64,000 nt of DNA from Blastocladiella emersonii ATCC 22665 (Eukaryota; Fungi; Blastocladiomycota): NCBI GenBank assembly GCA_025594325.1, contig JANHCV010000005.1:1178001-1242000 (forward strand), written 5' to 3'. Shown here in pieces: positions 13,846 through 57,055 of the stretch. Within the stretch, counting starts at the first letter, position 1; each line of letters opens with the position of its first letter. The position numbers and the translations under genes are program-made. The notes under the pieces are model-generated. The model ran no database searches, was not told the DNA's origin, and saw nothing but the letters and a program-made list of their open reading frames with translations.

Positions 13846-14984
13846 TCACCATCGCGACACCGCCGCGATCTCGTGCCGCATGACGGGCACGTACCGGTGG
13901 ATCACAACGATGGCGTACCCGCGCGCGGCCATCCACAGGACAGACGGCGCGCCCGCCTCGCCCATCACGATCCACGCGCCGACCTGCTCGGCGAGCAGCA
14001 GCGCCGTCAGCGCGGCGTAGGCCCAGGCGAGCGCGCGGTACGTTGCGAGGCTGCGCGATTTGGCGGCGTGGATCAGCGCCGTGAACCCGGCGAGGATGAA
14101 CAGGGACGCGGTCGCAAAGGCGACGTCGAGCGGGGATAGGCTGTCGTTCTCGTCGCGGCGGCGGCCGCCGTCCGACGGGGGATCGAGTACGGGCCGGTGA
14201 TACGACAGCGTCGAGTCGACGATGGCGGCGAAGGCGGAGCGCCATGCGATGGCGCAGTACACGACGAATGCATAGTACAGCTACACGTTGCGCGAACCAT
14301 CGTGAGCGAAGGACGTCTCCCGAAAGGCGAGCTGGCAGCGAAGCGTACCCATTGGGTCCCGAGGAGCAAGAGGACGCCGGCGCGCAGATCGAAGCAGCAG
14401 CAGCACGTCGCGCGATCCACGAGCGGGCGCGCTGCCGCGGCGTCGAGGATCGCGTACGCGCTTCCCGCGGCTGACTCGCTCGCTGACGAGGACGACGACG
14501 ACGAGGTGGCGATGTGGCGGTGGACGTGCGTGTGGTGGTGATGGACGACGACTTGCGGGACAGCGGCCGCCGCCGACTCGGTGTACGATGGCGGCAGCAG
14601 CAGCGATGACGATGGACCTGCACCCGCCGCCGCGTTCCCGGCCAGCAGCGGCGCCGTCTCCTTGAGCAGGTACTGCGCGGGCAACGGCGGGATCGGCGGC
14701 ACGTTCCCCGCGTCGCAGCCGAGCGGGTTTGGCATGGCGGACGCGGCGAGCGCGGGCGAGTAGTCTGGCGGCGGCGGGGCCGGCAGCGACTGGTACTCGA
14801 AGCGCGCGGCCGTCGTCGCGTTGGACGGCGACGCGAGCGGCGGCGGCTGTTGTGGTTGCCGGTCCGAGTCGACGGATGACGGCGGCGTGCGCGGCGCCGG
14901 GTACCGCGGGATGGGCGTGGCGGCGGCCGACGTCGACGACGAGGACGCCGTCATGGGCGGTTGCTGCTGCGAGGGGTGCGGCAT
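13846..14984 (-). CDS. PY-motif LAPTM-like membrane protein (exons 14984-14349, 14280-13846)
   Basis: PPPDY and LPPSY; CCCCFDLRAGVLLLLG; 68-nt intron after QW; TM module. Confidence 0.85.
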
Positions 14985-15820
14985 GGTGAAGCGCGGTTGT
15001 CGCAGTCGTTGTCGTGGTGGGTGCTCCGTGGCGTCGTCGTCGCGGGCGGTGCTGATGTTGCAGGGTGTGCGAGGATCGTCGTCGTCGTCGGTGCGGTGTG
15101 GGACGAGACGGATGAGCGGGCGAGTTGGCCACGGAGCAGACGCGACGACAACGAGATGGACGGTGCGATGGGGGAGGGAGAGAGCGCGAGCGAGCGACGA
15201 CGACGAGAAGCGGGGACCGTGACGAACGACGGACCCCTAAGCTCTAAAACGGACCCGGCCCGCCCGATATAAACTCTGCGCGGCGCACACGTTCCGTCTT
15301 CCTCTCTCCCCTCTGCACACACCACCGACGACGCCCGCCCGTTCTCACCGCCGTCGTCGCCGCCAAGACCGCCCAATCGAGCACCCTCGGCTGCGCGGAA
15401 GACAGCGGGCGCGGCGTCCCGTGCGTGCCGTGCGACGCGCGCGACGCGCCGCTTCGTCGCGTCCCATCGCGCAGCCGGGGAGGCAGGTCCTGCCGTGCAC
15501 GGCATGGAGGCTTTGGGGAGGCGTTCGCCCAGTGGTTCGCATGGGCCCACCTCGGCGTCAGCCTGAAAGCTTGCTCAGCGGCGGCGACGCCAAGGTTTAG
15601 GCGTCGCGCGGGCCCGGCCGGATCACGTCCACCATCAACCGACCAGCCGACCACCCGACGCGTCGCTTGCGATGCATCGAAATGGCGGGGATCAGCTCAG
15701 TCAAACTCGCTGCTGCCGCGCGGATGCGCCAGGGCGGAACAACGGACTCGGACTAGGACTAAGTGGGACTGTATATAACAACGTAGCGTAGTAGCAAAGG
15801 AGACACTCACCACCACCGGC

Positions 15821-37720: not shown

Positions 37721-38330
37721 CTACACAATCACCTCGAGCAGGTCGCGCTCCCACAGGAACGCCACAAGCGCGGCCGACCCAGCGCAGTCGAACAGGTTGA
37801 GCAGGCACCGGTACTCGCCGTCGAGCTTGAATTTGGCTGCGCCTGCGGTCGTCGGCGCTGCGGGCCGATCGTAGTTGGGCACGACGTGAACGAACGTCTG
37901 GAAGGCCGCCACGCTCACGGCGTGGTACCGACCGAGGCCCATACCCGGTTCCGCGGGATGCAGGGCAAGGACCTGTAACGGGATGTTCTTGCACTTTTTG
38001 CCGCCGCCCGGCGTGTCGTCCTGGACGCGGAACTGCTCGACGATGGCCACGTCGTGCTCGGTGCCGTTGTGCGTGAAGTGCAGCGCGGCGGCCAGCTTCC
38101 CAACGCGGTACTTCTTGTCCGACGTGAGATACTACCGTACGCGAGATAATAGCAGATGTTAGCGACCGAACGATTCGGGTATGAGCACAGCCAGCAGCGT
38201 ACCATGACCCAGTCCGCGTGCGTCTTGCCGCGGGTCGGGAACTCGCACGTTCCCGTGATCTGCTCGTTGCGGAACCCGCCGAGCGAGAAGGCCTCGAACG
38301 AGATTGCCTTGGACATGAGGAACTACACGC
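37721..38330 (-). mobile_element. Relic of a Plavaka-like transposase C-terminus
   Basis: GKTHADWVMV..KYRVGKLAAALHFTHNGTEHDVAIVEQF parallels GRQVHDGILF..EYRIGKLVQLLEF..HEAAVVDML of the transposase at 47874-51249. Confidence 0.5.
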
Positions 38331-39948
38331 ATCGCGAGCCGGGAAGCGTCAGTTTCTCTTCAATTTGATGCAGATCGCGCCCACGCGGATACCTTGCCGT
38401 CGTCAGGGCCCAGCAACGGATCGTCGGCCGCGCGCTGCGCCAAGAGTCCAGCGTCCTCTGCCAAGTAACCATGGAGGATCTGGGCGAGGCACTCTGACGT
38501 GCTGTTCCTCGGACTCGCTAAGGCGTTCGAGGTCAAATACAGCGAGATCCGATCCAGGGCATGCTCGATCACGGTGCGTTCTTGACCTGGTCCGCGGCCT
38601 AGGATGCGCGCTTCGAGCCCCTCGCAAACACGCACGTACGCGTCTCACTGCAGATCAAGCGGCAGTGTGCTGGCGCCAACATCGACAAGACCAAGGTCCT
38701 CGACTCACTGCAGTGCAAGGATCAGTCGCCCTCGGCTACGAGGTCCACGCGGTACGTCTCGCGCGCACTGCCCCTCTCTCTCTCCGCGTCGCTGACCTTG
38801 CGCCCCTCCGCGCCAGGGCAACGACACTCGGCGGCGCAGAAGTCCAAGCCCGACTCGCTGCGACGGTCGGTGACCGTGGCCATCGCCGACGCCAAGTGCG
38901 AGATCACGTCGCTCAAGGAGATCAAGGGCGCCAGCCTCCGCGCGGCCATCAAGCGCACCCACTCAGCCCGATCAAGATCGACTGCCACGTCGAAGGTGGG
39001 CGGGCGGCCACGGGTCGGCGGCATCGAGACCGAGCTCAAGCACTCGTTCCCGCGCATCAAGGAGTGGCGGCGACGGCGGCCGCGGAAGAGCTCGGGCCGC
39101 GAGCGCCGGATGGGCGCGGTTGCGGCCGCGAGCAGCGGCGTATCATGATTAAAACAGACCTATTATTCGAATCGGTCTATCGGAATGCCTATCAGGGTGA
39201 GCACGTGATTCTATATTGAGGCGCAGCGCGTCCGGCGGCGCGAACCAGGCGCGACCTCTTGCGCCAGCGTTTGCGCGAACCGAGGCCCGGGTTTGCGCAT
39301 ACATGGGGTCTCGATGGTGCCCAACATCGGCCCCTTTGCGCAAACCCTCGCGCAACGGGTCGCGCAAGCGGGGTTCGCGCAAGGGTTTGTGCCAACCGAT
39401 GCGCAAAGGACCAATGGCTGGGAGCCGTTTCGGCGATGGAGGCGGCAGCGTTGACTGAAGCGACCGTCCCGTGTGACTGGCAGCCGGTGCTAATAAGAGC
39501 TTGCGTGTTTGTTTGTGTGTGCGAGAACGCCAAGCTTCGTATATGTTTCGAAGCGCAACATTGGGATGCGACCGAGATCGACGCGCCGCGCCACACGCGT
39601 GCGACACGTGTGTGGCTCAGCGCGAGAGCTCCGAGTTCGCCACTACGCTCGCCGACGGCTCCAACCTGAGCTCCAACAACTCGTTCAGGCAAAGATCAAG
39701 TTTCTGGCTATGGGCCAGCCCGACCTTGCTTCTCTCAAACGCGACCACGTCAAGCCAGCTGCCAGCCCGCACGCCAAGTCGTTCCCCGCTCGCTCACCCT
39801 GATCGCAGATCCTCGCTTTCGTTCCGTCAGCGATGTTCATAGACTTGATTGTATGCACGTATATAGAAGACAGATCACGATGTGGGGAACAGCAGGAAGT
39901 CACGCAAAGCACACAGCGCGGCGCTCGTCGCGCCGTACCAAGAGATTT

Positions 39949-44541: not shown

Positions 44542-44859
44542 ATGCAGCAAAGCCTTACAGACTACTTGCCCATCAGCATCCTCGAATCGGTCTTTCGCCT
44601 CGCGACGCCGCGGCGGATCGTCCTGGCGTCGTTGCGCGAACTCTTCCACTTGACTCGCTCAGCCCAAGTTCGCCCAGTCTGGCTCAAGCGCTGCATAGTT
44701 GCGGCTGTGGGCAGCGACGATCGCCCGCATCTCAATGCAAACCCCAACCTTGCAATGTCCCAAAGCGAGCCTGACATTGGCAAGCTAATCTTCAAACGCG
44801 GGCTTTACTACGACGCGGCCTGCCATCCTTCACTAACGCCGAGTCGCCTCACACCACTT
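44542..44859 (+). pseudogene. F-box-like family copy 1, 5' half (disrupted by the Plavaka insertion)
   Basis: MQQSLTDYLPISILESVFRLATPRR..RLTPL aligns with 55982 copy residues up to TPL. Confidence 0.9.
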
Positions 44860-45269
44860 CATCGTGAGTTTTTTTTTGGGGGTCGATTCGGTGCGTTTGG
44901 TGCGGTCGCGGCGGGGGACTGAATCCAAGTACTTATCGCGAATTCACGGAAATCCACCGAATTCTGCGACCGCAATCAAATTCCCAACCTCTCCTCGAAT
45001 TCGCGGCCCCTGGCCGGATCCCCAGCTAGTACCTGAACCCGCCACGACCACACAAAATTGCAGAAGCAGCTTGGATACGGCCTCCCTGAATGAATTGGTC
45101 ACCTCACTGAAATGCGACAGCATTCCTCAAAACCTGGTCAGCGCGCAGAACCTCACCAGCGACGGATTATCCCGCGCCGCTCTCAATATTAGATAGCTCG
45201 CGCTGTGGAGAATGAACAATACAATCGATGATAGATGAGGGGGGCAAGGTGTATATTGCAGGGAATCAA

Positions 45270-46627
45270 TCAGGTCAATGGTCGTGGCGCGCAGACGTGA
45301 CGCTTCTTGCAACGGCGGCCTGCGTCGATGAGCTCGTTGCCAAACGCAAACCACTTGTCGCTCGAGATGTTGCTGGGCGTTGGGGGGATGTACGTGTTGA
45401 GGACGCAAGCAAAGACGACGCGACCGTGGGCCTGGAAGAGAACGCTGAGCTGGTCGTCGAGCTGGGCCTTTGTCCAAGTTGTGCCAGACGGCTTCATGGC
45501 GAAGAACTTCTTGTCCCGCTCGTCCTGGAACTTGTCCTGCAGGTCACTCTGCTGGTCTGAGGCGCCGTGGAGCGGGGCGCGTAGCAGCTCGCTGGGCGAA
45601 CTGTCCGGGTAGAACTCGCGCAGGAAGGACTCGTACAGCGCCGACTGGTCCTCGTTGAAGGCGACCGTCTTGCAATCAGATCTGCAGAGCACGTCGAAGA
45701 CCACAACGATGAAGCACACAAGGCGGACGATGACCTCGAGGTCAGCGGGGGCCAGGCGGAGCGACAGGGTCCCGTCCTTGCCAACGACTACGCTGCCCTT
45801 GAAACCGAGGCCAGGGAGGCTATTCCACAAGTACAGGGTGTCGGCTGTGGGACGGTCAGTTGGCGCCGCAACAAGGTGGTGAGCGCAAGACACGAGGGCG
45901 TACCGTGCGACAACTTGGCAAACATGATCTCAATGACCTTGTGGATGAACGGGTGGGTGCCAAGGTAGCGCCACTTGGCTGGCGCGGCGGGGTGTGACAC
46001 CTTGGCCTCGGCCTCCTCCTCCTCGTCGTCCTCCTCCTCGAGCTCGGCCTCGTTGTCGCTGTCAAAGTCGCCGTTGTCAAAGTCCTTGGGGTTGTTGCTG
46101 GCCGGGTCGAAGACAAAGGTCGACAGCCAGTGCTTGAAGTGGAGGCGGCCAGGAAGACTGCTTGATGGAGGGAGGACGTGGTGGATGAGCGTCAGGGCGT
46201 GGATGTCAACGTTATCGAGGCGGGCGATCGCCTGCTCGTTGCCCTTCTTGTGGAAGTAGGCGGCGGCGCGCTTGATGGTGGTGCGGGCGGGGCGGGAGCG
46301 GCCCTTGATGAGGTTCTCGGAGTCCTTGATGGCCTTCTTGGCGGCTGACGCGAGGTTGGAGAGGAGGTTGGAGGCCACACGTGTGGGGCCCTACACAACG
46401 GGACAAGGCGGTTAGTCTGCATTGATAAGTAAACGAGGTGAGCGGTGCGCGCATACGTTTGCCTCGCGTTCAGCCGCGGTGCAGAGGAGCTGCTGCTGCT
46501 GAGGGACATGGTCGACAGGGACGGCGAGCTCGTATCGCGCGGCAGCCTCGAGCAGCGACTGATACATGCACTCGAGCAGGATACCCGAGCGCAGCCTGAG
46601 ACTGATCTGCTTGTCGATCTTCGCCAT
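45270..46627 (-). CDS. Transposon accessory protein of unknown function (exons 46627-46457, 46390-45904, 45844-45270; 410 aa)
   Basis: Two GT-AG introns (66 and 59 nt; ACTAAC branch point in the first) give one open frame of 1233 nt; acidic tract EEEDDEEEEAE. Confidence 0.75.
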
Positions 46628-46716
46628 GAGCGGAGAGACTGGCAAGGGCGACGGCGAGGGCGGGGCGTGGGTCAGCCCGGCTCGCGGGAGGCGAACAGCG
46701 CGGGTCACGGAGGAGC

Positions 46717-47448
46717 GTATGGTGCACGACACGAAAAACCTCCAAGGGCCCTGCACGTGACCAGCCGAAAGTGAGCAAAAATGCACGGGAACCTTTGAAA
46801 CCTTTCAGCCCTTCCATTTCAAGTCTTCTCGCCGTTTAACTTGCTGCAATTAAACATTTATAGAATTCTCTACAGGTTTAGTGGAGCACGGTGAGCATCA
46901 CAGCCACGGGGAGCTGACGTCGCTGGGGGGCTGCGATCACCGTGGGGATCAGCGTGGCTTCCGGTGCCCCGCTGCGGTGCCAGTCGCTGCCCGGCTGCAA
47001 ACAACTCGCGACGGCAGCGTCACAGGAGATCTCCTGTGATGCTGCCGTCGCGACCGAGTTCGTCAACTCGAAGAAGAAGTCGCACCGCCCCCAGGCGATA
47101 GCGAGCTCAAGGTGCTCCTCAACAAGCACATCGCCAAGAAGCGTGCAGGCGGAGAGCTCAGCCCAGTCGATCTTCGAGTCGTCGAGGTTCTCGTCCAGTA
47201 CCTCGAGGTCGAGCGCATGGACGTGGACGGCGTGGCCGTCGCCCTGACCTCGACTCCGCTGGCGCCAATGCTCCCGATCCATCGGACTGCCCAGTAACTT
47301 TGTATTGCATAAAATTGCGATCATTTTGCAGGTAGTTGCATGGGAATTCGTTAAGTATTGAAGGTGCTGAAAGAGTTCAAAGTTTTACGTGTATTTGGTC
47401 ACCGCGGTGGGGTGACGGCCTGAAGGTTTCTCGTGTCGTGCACCATAC
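46717..47448. repeat. Internal inverted repeats (28 bp, 26/28 identical, with weaker inward extension)
   Basis: GTATGGTGCACGACACGAAAAACCTCCA (46717-46744) versus the reverse complement of 47421-47448. Confidence 0.85.
47006..47053. repeat. 48-nt near-perfect palindrome
   Basis: TCGCGACGGCAGCGTCACAGGAG-AT-CTCCTGTGATGCTGCCGTCGCGA, one mismatch. Confidence 0.95.
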
Positions 47449-47873
47449 CACGAGGACGATCGATCGGAGCGCCAGATTCGCCGTCGGACGACCCGTCGGA
47501 CATGGTGGCGATGGTGATGGGGGAAGGTGATGGGGTAGGAGGGGTGGGTCGGGTGTTGCGTGGTGGGTAGATGTGTGCGTGGTTGATGTGTGCGTGCAAG
47601 ACTTGGCGGGTGCGTGCGGACAAGAGCGTTGGAGGCGGGCGGGGCCGCACTGATGCTTTGCTCGGTGCGGTTGCTAGGGGCCGGAAGGCGTGTTGACCCG
47701 GGTAACGTGAGCCCTCATGACGCGTTGCCCAGCCCAAGGCTGCGCCACCGCGGCCTGCACGCGGCCGTCGCGACCGCGACCGCGACCGCGACCGCGGCCG
47801 GACCTTCCCACCTCCCACGGAAAGCACTGGAAACGGAAATTCAAGCGCAACTAGAAGCAATGCTATCGACGAC

Positions 47874-50800
47874 ATGACCAAAACATCCTTCGCCTGTCCC
47901 AACTGCTCCAAGCCGTCCAAGTCGCAACGCGGCGTGACCAACCACCTCAGGACCTGCAACGCCCCCGTGCCTCCCGCCGCGCCCCGACCCAGACGGACGC
48001 AACGCGTGCGGGCGGATGTCGAGTCCGCCTCGCCGTACTCTAAGGACGCGTACTATGACGCGGACAACGGCGTCGAGATCAGCGAGCAGCGCGCCGCCGC
48101 CGCGCACGCGGCCGCGCTCGCCGCCAGCGACCCCGCCTTTGCCGACCTGTCCGAGGTAGCGCCTGTGCTCGCCAACCAGCTAGAGCACGGCACTCCCGAC
48201 GACGACAACACGGATGGGGCGGGCGAGTCGGGTCGGTTCACGGACGAGGAGCTCGCGCGCCTTGCTTCCCTGCGCGAGCGCGCCGAGACCATCATCCTCG
48301 GCGAACGCGACGGTATTCTCAAGATCCGTACGTGTTCATGGCTTCGCCCGTTGTCCCACGTCCGCTTACCTCCACCACACGCTTCGCATACAGCTGACAA
48401 CGAGGTCTTTGGACCGCTCAAGGCCGCCTACGACTTCGAGTACGCGCGCATGCTCCTGAGCAAGCTTGATCTCAACGAGCGCGAGTTCGACGAGCTCATG
48501 GCCTTCGACCGCGAGTTCGACCGCCGTCTTCCCTCCTCCTTCTCCTCTTTTGCCACCCTCCGCGCTCGTCTCGAGGAGTCCAAACTGCACCGTCCCTTCA
48601 CCTTCCCGACCGTGACGCCGCTCCATCTCTCCACCCCACTCAATTTCCCCAAGCGGTGCCTCCTGCAGACCATCCTCGATCTGTTTGGAAACCCAAAGTT
48701 CCGCCACTACACCTCGTTCCGTCCTGTCCCTCTTGCTCCAGCGGACGCCACCGACGTTGATGGCGCGCCACCGCCGCCGCCGCCCGTCATTGGCGACCTC
48801 GCGACCGCGTCGGCGTGGCGTGCTGCTGAAGCTTCGCTCGCTGAGCGGTTTGGTAGCCTCAAGGCCGAGCATCCCTCAAAGCCCGGCACCTTCATCGACC
48901 GGATTCTCATCCCGTTCATCTTCTACTCGGACAAGGCCGACGTCTCCGCCAACACGTGTGCGTGTTCTTGCGGTTCCGCAAGGTAAGGATGCATGTGCTG
49001 ATCGATACTCGTTGCGTGTAGCCGCGCACCCAGCGTACGTTCGCCTCGGCAACCACGACCCGTCGGTCGAGTCCATGGCGAGCTACCGCGGGATGCCGCT
49101 CGTTGGGGTCTTCCCGTACGTGACGGAGGCGATCTCGCGGGCCCTCACGGACACGAAACGGGCGGCCGCTCGCCGCGACGTGCTGCACCAGTGCCTCGCG
49201 CTGCTCCTGGGCGACCCGAAGTTCGCCGCTGCCGTGCGCGACGGCGTCCTCGCGGTTGGCCCCGACGGCAAGGAGTACATCGTGCACCCGTGGTTCTGCC
49301 ACTACTCGACCGACCTGCAGGAGATCTACACGCTCTCACACCTGCGCGGCGCGAACTCGGCGTTCCCGTGCCCCGAGTGCATGGTCCCCGCCAACATGAT
49401 CAACGCCAACACGCTCGCCGGCCACGATCACTGCCGCCGCTCGCAGGAGGAGACGGAGCGTCTCGTGGACGAGTACTCGTCCAAGACCGACAAGGAGCGC
49501 GAGGAGATGGGCCGCCTGCTGAGCATCTTCCTCGTGAAGAGCGGCCTGTGGTCGTCATGTCGCGACGTGTACCTCCAGTTTGGCGGCGACCCGCTGCACA
49601 CGATCGACATCGGCATCACCAAGTACGTGATTGACATCATCCTCGACGCCATCAACCTGCTGCCCAAGACCGGGTCCGCGGCGACCCGCACAACGGCCAA
49701 GGCGCGCAAGCTCGTCGACACGTTCATGAGCAGCGCGCTCCCGTTCTCGTCGTTCTACCGCTCGCGCAAGACGAGCGTGCTCGAGGGCACCAAGACCATG
49801 GCCTACGAGTACTCGAACGCCGTCAAGGTGCTCGCGCTTGGGCTGTTCGCGCTCGGCCCGCTTCCTCATGTGCCGTCGCTGTTCCCACTCGTGCGCGCGT
49901 ACGTCGACTTCGTGCACCTCATCCGCCTCCCCAAGCACACGGCCGCGACGCTCCAGGACTCGGACGACGCGCTCGCCCTCGTGTACCGCTACATGGACGC
50001 CTCGTACAAGGAGATCATCGCCAAGATCGACCCAAGCGACGCCAACGTCGCCGCCGCGGCCGCGGCCGCTGCAGGCCTCGCGTCGCCCGCGCCGTCCGGC
50101 GCCAGTTCCAGCTCGTCGAGTGCACCCGCCGCCCCCGCCAGCGTCCTCCCTGAACAGGGCGAGGAGCGCGCGCCGCTCGGTTCTGCGGCAGCCGCGGCGG
50201 CAGCCCCCGCCGCCAAGGGCAAGAAGGACGAGTACAAGCGCCCCACGCCCATCAAGCTGCACCTCCTGCGCCACTACCGCGCCCTCATCGAGCGGTTCGG
50301 CCCGATCGACATGCAGGGCAGCCAGCGCGGCGAGAAGGAGCACTCGGTTACGACCAAGGGTGCGGCTCGCCACACCAACTTCAACTACAACACGTTTACC
50401 AAGCAGCTCGCCATCTGGGTGAGCTTGCGCGACACGTGCGACGCGATTGGCGACTACGCCGCCTTCCACCGACCAGATCTGCTCTCGCCGATGCTCCGCC
50501 GCGAGTTCAAGCACACGATCATGGCGCGCGGGCCCCCTCCGCCCACGTACGCCGTCGGCGAGCCGGCGGTCGCGCTGGTCGCTCCAGTGGCGGGCAAGCC
50601 GCTGCTGCTGCACGCGTCGCAGGACGGCATCGGTGTGGAAGCGGGCCAGCTTCACCCCGCCGCCATCCCGCTTCTCGCGGCGCAGCCGAACATGACGTAC
50701 GCGCCGCTACCCGACGACGTCCGCCACTCGCCGCCGCTGCGCGTCTTCGCCCGCACGGCGTCCGTCAAGGTGTTCCGCTCGTTCCTCCTCTCGGTTCGCT

Positions 50801-51249
50801 CAACCTTTCTGCACGGCCACGAGGTCAACCAGTCGGCGCGCGCGCATGCCGGCCTTCACCATGGGCGCCAGGTGCACGACGGCATCCTGTTCGAGACGGG
50901 TGGCGAGTATCGGATTGGCAAGCTCGTTCAGCTACTCGAGTTCAAGGACTCGGCGGGCGGGATGCACGAGGCCGCCGTCGTGGACATGCTTCGCGTCAGC
51001 CGCCAGTGCACGCAGACGGGCCTCGTGATCTGTGGACCTGCTGGGACGCCGACGGCGGGCAGCCCGGCGCACGGCAGGGCGCTGGTCATGCTCAACAAGG
51101 TGGTCTCGGTCCTCAACATCGTCCCGAGCCCTCACCTTGCGCGCGAGCACCTGGTGAACGGCGACGCGGATCGCCACAGCTTCATGGCGCTGCGCGACAA
51201 GCGGATCCGCGCCTCTCTCGGGCTCACCAGTCTCCGGCCACCTGGCTAG
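47874..51249 (+). CDS. Plavaka transposase (exons 47874-48327, 48394-48957, 49022-51249; 1081 aa)
   Basis: N-terminal C2HC finger CPNC..HLRTC; FYSDK..S|AHPAYVRLGN; GPDGK..HPWFCHYSTDLQE; CPEC; DPLHTIDIG; KLHLLRHY..FG..GEKEH. Confidence 0.9.
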
Positions 51250-51507
51250 AGCCTCACGGGCCTCGTGGCAATACATATGTTTCGTTGCATGGACTGTTCA
51301 TCGATTTTCTGAGGGGTGTTGAATTTAGTGCATTAAGGCTTAGTGCTCTAAATTGGAGAGGTGGATTTTTTTCGAGGCTCGGACGCGACCCGGTCACCGC
51401 GAAAGTGAAAATATTCAGGCGGCGGTGGCGAGGGCACCGAAAGCCGTGTAGGGGTGACGGAAAGCTGGCGGGAGCGGCGAAAGGCGGTGAGGCCGTTTCA
51501 CGATGTT

Positions 51508-52302
51508 GTTCGTGGCCTTGGCGACTGGCTTGTCGAGCAGGCTGCTTCTCTGTTCGAGCACGCGTCCCGCGACGAGGCTTGGCTCGCTGGCCGCATCGCG
51601 ACGGAAATCAGCCAGAATCGTGCTGGGGACTCGCGTAGCGGTCAGTTTTTCAACGTTCCAATCTACGCTCTTGTGCAGCTACTCGTCGGCATCGTCACCT
51701 TCCGCGACCCAGCGACGCTTGAGCATCTGCTCACCCGTATCCGCGAGGAGATTCCCGCGCTTCTCCGCACCAAAATCGAACAGAATGCTCTCATCGGTTC
51801 GGTTTGGGCCATGGCTCAAGTGGAGCACCTCGAGACCCCCGAGCCAGAGACAACGTGGGAAGATTTGCTTTGGAGTTGGTTCGAGACCATCTGGCCGACT
51901 GAATCAGCGGAACTCGATCAGTCCACGGCCATCGACGACGCGTCCATCTTTGACGCGTACAACGAGCATTGGTGCCCGGTCCCGCTAAACGTCTTCTTGA
52001 CGTACACCTCCGTTTTTCACTGGAGCAAGGACGTGTTTGTGGTGCTCGTTGATCCCAAGTTTGGTCTCGATGTCAAGCTGTTCATCCGTTACGCGCGCAT
52101 GGAAGACTTTTGCCAAGCTGTGCTGCAGAACCTCGAGCAGCTGTGGTGCCCCGCCAAGGAAGTTATCATGATCATGGACTGGCTCTTCGACCACGGCTGG
52201 AACATCAAAAAGGCGGCCCCGACGGGCATGGGTGACACCTTTTACGTTTATCTGGCCAAGTTCCACCAGGGCAAGCTACGCTATCACTACCGCGGTTACT
52301 GA
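51508..52302 (+). pseudogene. F-box-like family copy 1, 3' half
   Basis: VRGLGDWLVEQAASLFE.. continues the frame of 44542-44859; the reconstituted ORF is 370 aa. Confidence 0.9.
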
Positions 52303-52395: not shown

Positions 52396-52902
52396 GTGGA
52401 GACGCTCAAGCATCTGCTTTCCCGCATCGCCAAGGAAGTCCCAGCGTTCCTCCGCACCAAGATGGCGCAGTACGCTCTCATCGATTTCGTCTGGTCGAGG
52501 ACGCAACCAAATGAAATCGACACGCCCGAGGCGGACATGCCTAGCGACGCAGCCTTGCCGTCGTCCGACCCGCTTCCAATCCCGCTTCACGTCTTCCTGG
52601 CGTACACCGCTGTGTTCCACTGGAACAACGACGTGTTTCTGCTGCTCGTCGACCCGCAGTCTGGGCTGGACATCTCGCAGTTCATGCGCTACGCGTCCAC
52701 GGAGGCCTTTTGCGAGGCCGTCTTTGAGAACCTCCAGCAGCAGTGGGGTCCCGCCAAGAAGATCATCGCGATCATGGACTGGCTATTCAGTCGCAGTTGG
52801 AACTTCAACAAGGCGGACCCGACGGGCATGGGCGGAAGCTTTTACGAGTATCTCGGCAGATTCCACAAGCCGGATTTGCTCCGCCACTACCGCAGATATT
52901 GA
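52396..52902 (+). pseudogene. F-box-like family copy 2, 5'-truncated
   Basis: Only the C-terminal half (HLLSRI..VFHWN..DPQSGLD..WGPAK..DPTGMG). Confidence 0.75.
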
Positions 52903-55981: not shown

Positions 55982-57055
55982 ATGCAGCAACTATCAATGG
56001 ATGCCTTGCCCACCGACATACTCGAGTCGGTTTTCCGTCTCGCGACCCCGCGGTGCACGCTCCTCGCGTCGTCGCGCAGCTTCTTCGACCTTGCGCGCTC
56101 GGGCAAGGTACGCCCGATCTGGCTCAAGCAATGCATTGTTCGGGCCGTGGGCATCAAGGAGCCGAGCTTCTCGTTCGAAACCGTGACCGTGCCAGACGTT
56201 TACGAGCTCATCTTCAAGCGCGGCTGCGACTATGATCCAGCTCGCTACCCTTCACGGACGCCGAGCCGCTTCACGCCCCTTGTCCGCGGCCTCGGTGACT
56301 GGTTCGTTGAGTGGGCTGTGGCGGCGTTCGAGCGCGCGTGTCGCAGCGAGGACTGGCTCGCCGACCGCATCGCGGCCGAAGTCAAGACGGCGCGCCGGTT
56401 CCGCTTCCGCTCCAAGTTCGTCAAGACCCCGATCTACGCACTGGTGCAGTTGCTGGTCGGCATCGTTACTTTCCGCGACCCCGTCGAGCTTCGGCATCTG
56501 CTCGCTCGCATCCGCCAGCAGCTTCCCGCGCTCCTCCGCGTCAAGGTTGACCAAGATGCCCTCGTCGAGACGATCTGGACCATGGGGCAAGTCCACTACC
56601 TCGAGACGCCGGATATCGGCCCCATGACCGGCGAACTGTACCCCGCCCCGCTCCACGTCTTCCTTGCATACTCTGCCGTCTTCCACTGGAACGACGACGT
56701 GTTTGCCGTTCTCGTTGACCCGCAGTTTGGCCTCGACGTCGAGCTGTTCATGCGCTACGCGGCGACCGAGGGCTTCTGCGCTGCCGTGCTGGGGAACCTC
56801 CTGCAGCAGTGGGGACCCGCCAAGGAGGTCACCGCGATCATGGACTGGCTCTTTGACCAGGGCTGGAAGGTCAACTTGCGAGACCCGGCGGGCGAGGGAC
56901 GCAGCTTCGTCAGCTTCCTTCACGATTTCCAGCAGGACGGGCTGTTGGACTGGTTCACAGTCGCATGTAGTGTCGACTTGTTGCTCATTTTGCTCCGTTG
57001 CTCATTCCTCGAATATAGTGTCGACGCTCGATCACCCATAGTTGACAAGAAATGA
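55982..57055 (+). CDS. F-box-like family copy 5 (intact, 357 aa)
   Basis: MDALPTDILESVFRLATPR..TPLVRGLGDW..PIYALVQLLVG..WGPAKEV..DPAGEG. Confidence 0.8.
   Translation: MQQLSMDALPTDILESVFRLATPRCTLLASSRSFFDLARSGKVRPIWLKQCIVRAVGIKEPSFSFETVTVPDVYELIFKRGCDYDPARYPSRTPSRFTPLVRGLGDWFVEWAVAAFERACRSEDWLADRIAAEVKTARRFRFRSKFVKTPIYALVQLLVGIVTFRDPVELRHLLARIRQQLPALLRVKVDQDALVETIWTMGQVHYLETPDIGPMTGELYPAPLHVFLAYSAVFHWNDDVFAVLVDPQFGLDVELFMRYAATEGFCAAVLGNLLQQWGPAKEVTAIMDWLFDQGWKVNLRDPAGEGRSFVSFLHDFQQDGLLDWFTVACSVDLLLILLRCSFLEYSVDARSPIVDKK

Follow-up and report, generated by a model that had tools for sequence, protein, structure and literature searches.

A Plavaka transposon with CATCG ends and a RAG1-like predicted transposase core in a split gene of Blastocladiella emersonii

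We analyzed a 64,000-nucleotide stretch of the Blastocladiella emersonii ATCC 22665 genome (GCA_025594325.1, contig JANHCV010000005.1, positions 1,178,001 to 1,242,000 of the forward strand; this whole stretch is called the window, and coordinates count from its first base), which contains a Plavaka element of 6646 bp at positions 44860-51505, inserted in a host gene. The element begins with the terminal inverted repeat (TIR) CATCGTGA (44860-44867, plus strand), which has a 5'-CA end, and finishes with TCACGATG (51498-51505, plus strand), which has a TG-3' end. On either side lies one copy of the target-site duplication (TSD) TT, at 44858-44859 and 51506-51507, the left copy supplying the second and third bases of host codon 106 (CTT). 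Across the left junction (44850-44879), host CACACCACTT is followed by CATCGTGAGTTTTTTTTTGG of the element, and across the right junction (51491-51515), GGCCGTTTCACGATG is followed by TTGTTCGTGG. The TIR is perfect over 8 bp, and complementarity of the two ends ceases past base 8. An intact paralog of the host gene independently restricts the insertion boundary to 3 placements, so the chance of an 8-bp inverted match is, by simple arithmetic, about 3 x 4^-8, or ~5e-5. CA..TG termini combined with a short (2-3 bp) TSD are expected of a Plavaka element, and both are seen here.

The gene that the element interrupts belongs to a local paralog family. Its 5' part (codons 1-106; 44542-44859, plus strand) ends at the left junction and its 3' part (codons 107-370 and the stop codon; 51508-52302, plus strand) resumes directly after the right TSD copy, which places the insertion precisely at the boundary of codons 106 and 107. 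When the element and one TT are deleted, a 425-codon open frame results, and from the MQQSL start this frame gives a stop-free 370-aa open reading frame (ORF), made by joining 44542-44859 to 51508-52302. The restored protein is 53% identical to that of the intact paralog (55982-57055, plus strand), which serves as a stand-in for the empty site. Across the junction, host TPSRLTPLVRGLGDW and paralog TPSRFTPLVRGLGDW align without a gap, and at the DNA level host CTT followed by GTTCGTGG aligns with paralog CTTGTCCGCGG. The empty site, with the element gone, is predicted to read CCACTTGTTCG. An earlier reading of this DNA from its letters alone (the sequence-only reading) had proposed a complete Plavaka transposon with base-exact ends, an 8-bp TIR, and a 2-bp TSD, whose precise removal restores the host ORF; the end sequences and the gap-free restored gene confirm both proposals. 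We also found that the 163-aa gene called by NCBI at the 3' part (window 51811-52302 and 52462-52902; L001:13938-14429 and 14589-15029) is merely a 3' fragment of the split host gene, and that the 5' fragment at 44542-44859 is unannotated by NCBI.

A mis-join in the assembly had been named as a possible refutation. Public reads containing the stretch come from three runs, all of one sample that is probably the assembly's own source. In Logan contigs from each of the three runs, the left junction (44859/44860), which is the junction covered by this check, was crossed without branching, and the word depth there was equal in flank and element. The unbranched contigs and equal depth argue against a mis-join, and the equal depth also argues against a second copy with the same terminal region. 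The element appears to be single copy. The contigs differed slightly from the assembly at two places: in run X3 the T9 tract directly after the left TIR (44869) is shorter by one base, and in runs X2 and X3 the contigs lack 3 bases at 47070. Since all runs derive from one sample, these differences may be homopolymer or assembly effects rather than alleles.

Within the element, the Plavaka transposase gene H9P43_005074 (47874-51249, plus strand) is modeled by NCBI with three introns, and the transposase that we derived from the window is identical to it. Its exons lie at approximately 47874-47966, 48024-48328, 48394-48957, and 49022-51249. The intron at 48958-49021 (GTGCGT...CTGAT...TAG) is common to the NCBI model and to a one-intron alternative that encodes 1103 aa, and it was also found independently. 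The length of 1081 aa given by the sequence-only reading was not exact, as the NCBI product has 1062 aa, but the four catalytic positions that it listed, D (YSDK), D (STDLQE), H (DPLH), and E (GEKEH), are indeed retained as D312, D418, H513, and E758. None of the four varies among 16 diverse homologs, nor do C437, C440, D510, K732, H734, and H761. The motifs comprise the triad D312/D418/E758, C437-x2-C440, H734-x3-H738, and D510/H513, with H738 present to complete the H(3)H motif with H734, and the N terminus carries a zinc finger of the form CxxC..HxxxC. In an alignment of 51 homologs, two D columns, one C column, and two H columns are invariant, and the E and second C columns are nearly so. 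The transposase looks intact.

The predicted match to a Plavaka hidden Markov model was also borne out: the full transposase scored 70.6 bits against Pfam PF18759 (Plavaka), for which the cut-off is 26.3 bits, and exon 4 alone scored 50 bits. The Pfam scan of the transposase returned no other family, including no EnSpm family (Transposase_21, _23, or _24). A HMMER scan of 1.84 billion representative proteins gave 201 matches at E <= 1e-3, only four of them below 1e-30, and PF18759 was present in every one of these relatives that was scanned for families. The nearest relatives belong to three Blastocladiomycota (B. emersonii, B. britannica, and Catenaria anguillulae) or come from metagenomes, and Mucoromycota and Agaricomycetes follow. 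In a word-based search of a 5.8-billion-protein database, the transposase matched only itself.

A sequence profile search with the transposase against Protein Data Bank (PDB) chains gave no matches. We modeled residues 285-800 with AlphaFold2 from the 51-sequence alignment, and the core model had a predicted local distance difference test score (pLDDT) of 83 and a predicted template modeling score (pTM) of 0.83. The best PDB match found by Foldseek was the RAG1 core (E value 2e-6, probability 1.0, template modeling [TM] score ~0.5), with further matches to amphioxus BbRAGL (2e-3) and HzTransib (2e-2). The relation to RNase H-fold transposases of the CACTA/Mirage (CMC) type that had been put forward from the letters thus holds at the level of fold, in that the core folds like RAG1 and Transib.

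A second gene (45270-46627, minus strand) is divergent from the transposase gene and encodes 410 aa. Its exons (46627-46457, 46390-45904, and 45844-45270), with introns GTATGC..TAG and GTACGC..CAG, form the unique two-intron GT-AG solution, which is also the NCBI call. Searches gave neither a Pfam match (E up to 10) nor a protein-atlas lead, the spliced 410-aa protein not having been searched whole, and the product appears to be an orphan without recognizable domain. The 1.2-kb intergenic region between the two genes contains an imperfect inverted duplication with arms of ~100 bp, each toward one gene: the left arm (46717-46816) lies 90-190 bp upstream of the second-gene start codon and the right arm (47359-47448) lies 426-515 bp upstream of the transposase start codon. 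Its core of 25-28 nt is 93-96% complementary, and the duplication could be a mirrored promoter or binding module. A 48-nt near-perfect palindrome (46 of 48 bases; 47006-47053) lies in the same intergenic region, off the symmetry axis of the arms. The single-copy depth of the read contigs makes a high-copy miniature inverted-repeat transposable element an unlikely source of these intergenic repeats.

The subterminal regions of the two ends carry different sets of short repeats (44939-45002 versus 51400-51483). The left region (44868-45269) has the T9 tract, CGATTC at 44884, and CGAATTC at 44939, 44958, and 44996, the last motif being absent from the rest of the element; the right region (51250-51497) has CGAAAG at 51400, 51438, and 51478 and GGAAAG at 51459. 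These unequal ends may reflect two DNA-binding specificities, perhaps one residing in the zinc finger of the transposase and the other in the orphan protein. Elsewhere in the window, we considered an older Plavaka-like relic at 37721-38400. It is unsupported at the sensitivity of the tblastn and Pfam searches used: tblastn of 163 Plavaka-family proteins against the window found nothing beyond 44860-51505, and Pfam gave no match for the ORFs around 37721-38400.

Since a second full copy of this family was not found, we used relatives to examine the boundaries. In Catenaria anguillulae, two copies of a 6946-bp element (L003 and L004, 99.9% identical) have ends CATCGTAAACC..GGTTTACGATG, an 11-bp TIR (CATCGTAAACC), and TSDs of CC and AA. 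A deleted derivative in B. emersonii itself (L002:9146-12022, 2877 bp) has ends CATCGTAGG..CCACGATG and the TSD GC; its left end and left subterminal sequence, from L002:9146, are visibly similar to those of the window element. In Fennellomyces sp., a 6038-bp copy (L010:7997-14034) and a second copy (L009) have ends CATCGGA..TCCGATG and TSDs of AT (2 bp) and TCG (3 bp), respectively. Compared to the L010 copy, the L009 copy (strain T-0311) has ~5.7 kb of extra DNA in its left part (L009:2932-8687), and this DNA probably represents a nested insertion. A third B. emersonii family (L011 and L012) has ends CATCGTAGA..TCTACGATG, confirmed by alignment of two copies that are 91-97% identical. Terminal position 5 is G in the window element, in Catenaria, in Fennellomyces, and in two other B. 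emersonii families. In the Agaricomycete Dendrothele bispora, a 6424-bp element (L007:6750-13173) has CATCAG ends (CATCAGGAAAAACCCAAATC, a 21-bp TIR) and the TSD TA, and its two genes are arranged divergently, as in the window element. The Catenaria, L002, Fennellomyces, and Dendrothele elements each corroborate the end type independently.

The partner gene of the Dendrothele element encodes a DUF6532 protein. We also observed DUF6532 in a gene divergent from the Plavaka transposase both there (L007:7120-9625) and in the Mucoromycota element of Fennellomyces (L009:8654-9322), and it may be the usual Plavaka partner protein; it was undetected in the B. emersonii and Catenaria partner genes. The L011 and L012 copies (L011:4637-14435 and L012:4801-11800, on contigs JANHCV010000001.1 and ...10.1) form a 2.9-kb deleted Plavaka-like family. 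Both adjoin one unrelated 3.1-kb repeat, whose orientation and distance differ between the loci, and the L011 copy holds a 3.8-kb insertion with a 385-aa gene.

For a long time, Plavaka was known just by its transposase domain, until ends from Agaricomycetes were published in December 2025, when Kojima rebuilt complete families from Agaricomycotina and defined two lineages (Biology 14:1741, 2025, PMC12730594). PlavakaA has TGT..ACA ends with 2-bp TSDs, PlavakaB has CATCA..TGATG ends with 2- or 3-bp TSDs, and the elements in Figure S2 of that paper measure 6-9 kb (PMC12730594). The same work describes the CACTA/EnSpm-Mirage-Chapaev-Transib (CMCT) lineages as having mostly CA..TG termini and 2-5-bp TSDs, with a DDE triad, C(2)C, and H(3)H as clade motifs (PMC12730594). 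The claim that the window element defines the terminal architecture of a group recognized only by its protein domain therefore fails, as PlavakaA and PlavakaB ends and TSDs are already given there (PMC12730594), which also answers the question of the novelty of the ends. The window element does not have the TGT..ACA termini of PlavakaA. Its CATCG..CGATG termini match those of PlavakaB at 4 of 5 bases, and the PlavakaB TSD length of 2 or 3 bp is found in the window, Catenaria, and L002 elements (2 bp) and in Fennellomyces (2 and 3 bp). Neither the tree nor the supplements of that paper contain a Plavaka element from Blastocladiomycota or Mucoromycota (PMC12730594), and a literature search for B. 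emersonii transposons returned nothing relevant.

In a quick, unrooted IQ-TREE analysis of 61 proteins, without Kojima's sequences and with a single end-typed representative each for the A and B types, the Blastocladiomycota formed a clade (Shimodaira-Hasegawa-like approximate likelihood ratio test support, 99) that joined a Mucoromycota clade (95). With one typed element per lineage, this group lay apart from the clades of P0011 (CATCA ended) and P0020 (TGT ended). The tree and the shared CATCG ends suggest a distinct lineage in early-diverging fungi. Judged by its termini and transposase, the window element is a member of this CATCG-ended lineage of Blastocladiomycota and Mucoromycota, with an architecture like that of Agaricomycete PlavakaB (~6-9 kb), and can in this sense be called PlavakaB-like, its terminal pentamer differing at one base.

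Taken together, we consider it very probable that the window element is a Plavaka-group DNA transposon of the CMCT clade that is autonomous and moves by cut and paste. It inserted between host codons 106 and 107 with duplication of 2 bp (TT), and it carries two divergent, spliced, and apparently intact genes, for the orphan 410-aa protein and the 1062-aa transposase. The transposase core, which holds the triad D312/D418/E758, is predicted to have a RAG1/Transib-like RNase H fold interrupted by a zinc-binding insertion of the form C(2)C...H(3)H. In our model, the transposase would bind the CATCG termini, probably aided by the differing subterminal repeats of the two ends, and would cut both ends and reinsert the element with a 2-bp stagger. 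A route of nicking followed by hairpin formation may apply by analogy with RAG1 and Transib, and such chemistry is a reasonable inference. The intact genes, TIR, TSD, and open host halves suggest that the insertion is evolutionarily recent and that the element could still move.

Several observations weigh against this interpretation. No movement has been observed, only one full copy is detectable, and no empty-site allele was seen in the single sample. The TIR is just 8 bp long, and tblastn of the second gene in all fetched related elements gave no match, leaving that gene without a homolog among them. The nick-hairpin route would be an analogy drawn from a fold match with a TM score of ~0.5. 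Among the relatives, the 2-bp flanks of the L011 and L012 copies do not match (GT/AC and TT/CC), so TSDs are unverifiable in some copies; the left flanks of the two copies are not homologous, and the mismatch points to rearrangement, or to nesting within DNA rich in repeats. Lastly, a metagenomic relative (L005 and L006, one locus from two samples) has candidate ends CATCGT..ACGATG without a matching TSD (AA versus TG), so we do not count this locus as confirmation of the end type.

In one alternative, the element looks intact yet is immobile, a fixed single-copy resident that is silenced or heading to domestication, with its genes kept for other reasons or simply undecayed. That only one copy of the family is detectable, and that the other fetched B. 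emersonii relatives (L002, L011, and L012) are deleted or decayed, would fit such a history. However, the perfect TIR and TSD, the open host halves, and the full set of catalytic residues are marks of a young insertion, and domesticated transposases normally lose their TIRs, so we regard an immobile resident as improbable. Mirage produces 2-bp TSDs, a point that could be raised for an ordinary EnSpm/CACTA or Mirage element whose Plavaka label is an artefact of a weak domain match. Although Plavaka, EnSpm, and Mirage share CA..TG ends, a DDE triad, C(2)C, and H(3-4)H (PMC12730594), we give this alternative almost no weight, because PF18759 is the sole Pfam match, lies far over its cut-off, and recurs in all family-scanned HMMER relatives, while no EnSpm family was matched and the ends are CATCG rather than CACTA with a TSD of 2 bp rather than 3 bp.

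These findings do not overturn the known picture. Their novelty is modest and lies in a PlavakaB end motif that has changed to CATCG and in an orphan partner gene. To our knowledge, Plavaka elements of Blastocladiomycota and Mucoromycota are delimited here for the first time. With the Catenaria and Fennellomyces copies, the window element shows that the Plavaka architecture (CATC(A/G) ends, 2-3-bp TSD, ~6-7 kb) extends to early-diverging fungi, the divergent gene pair is seen in B. emersonii, Catenaria, and Dendrothele elements, and G at terminal position 5 would be diagnostic of the CATCG lineage. In practical terms, the element offers a clean seed for Plavaka annotation in Blastocladiomycota and Mucoromycota genomes and a well-defined, apparently intact candidate with which excision by this RAG1-like transposase group could be assayed for the first time. 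More tentatively, the CATCG-ended elements could constitute a third, early-branching, and undescribed Plavaka lineage whose one intact copy in B. emersonii has kept its mobility, a combination that we find possible but doubtful. If true, a laboratory fungus that can be cultured would for the first time make a Plavaka element accessible to experiment, one that combines a RAG1-like core with a 2-bp stagger and an orphan helper gene.

Compared with known systems, the likeness to RAG1, ProtoRAG (BbRAGL), and Transib is at the level of fold only. The predicted catalytic core superposes on theirs, and the distances from D418 to C437 (19 residues) and from H738 to E758 (20 residues) mirror those of mouse RAG1, where the corresponding residues are D708-C727 and H942-E962. 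In contrast, sequence identity is ~12%, their TSDs are 5 bp instead of 2 bp, the ends are CATCG (CATCGTG) instead of CACAGTG-type (CACxxTG) heptamers, and the window element has no RAG2-like partner. With EnSpm/CACTA, the element shares the CMC/CMCT clade, CA..TG ends, a two-gene content, and short subterminal repeats near the ends, but it lacks the CACTA termini and the 3-bp TSD, and none of the Transposase_21, _23, and _24 families was matched.

PlavakaB (PlavakaB-1/2_SLL, PlavakaB-1_SCH, and PlavakaB-1_AuSu; PMC12730594) shares with the window element CATC..GATG termini, CA..TG extremities, 2-3-bp TSDs, a size of 6-9 kb, a PF18759 transposase with the DDE triad and C(2)C and H(3-4)H motifs, and, in one delimited B-type element (Dendrothele L007), a divergent gene pair. 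The window element differs in its fifth terminal base (G rather than A), its 8-bp TIR compared to 21 bp in the Dendrothele element, a transposase that is ~21% identical, an orphan partner gene that is neither DUF6532 nor TET/JBP, and a host phylum, Blastocladiomycota, that is unsampled in PMC12730594. The nearest full-length relative with delimitable ends is found in the same phylum, the element of Catenaria anguillulae PL171 (ORZ29348.1/ORZ31050.1; L003:4821-11766 and L004). Its transposase is ~28-33% identical to that of the window element, its TIR is 11 bp rather than 8 bp, its second gene encodes 630-670 aa with no detectable similarity to the 410-aa gene, and it is present in at least two near-identical copies compared to one in the window family. 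Both elements have CATCGT..ACGATG termini, 2-bp TSDs, a divergent second gene upstream of the transposase gene, and similar lengths, that of the Catenaria element being ~6.9 kb.

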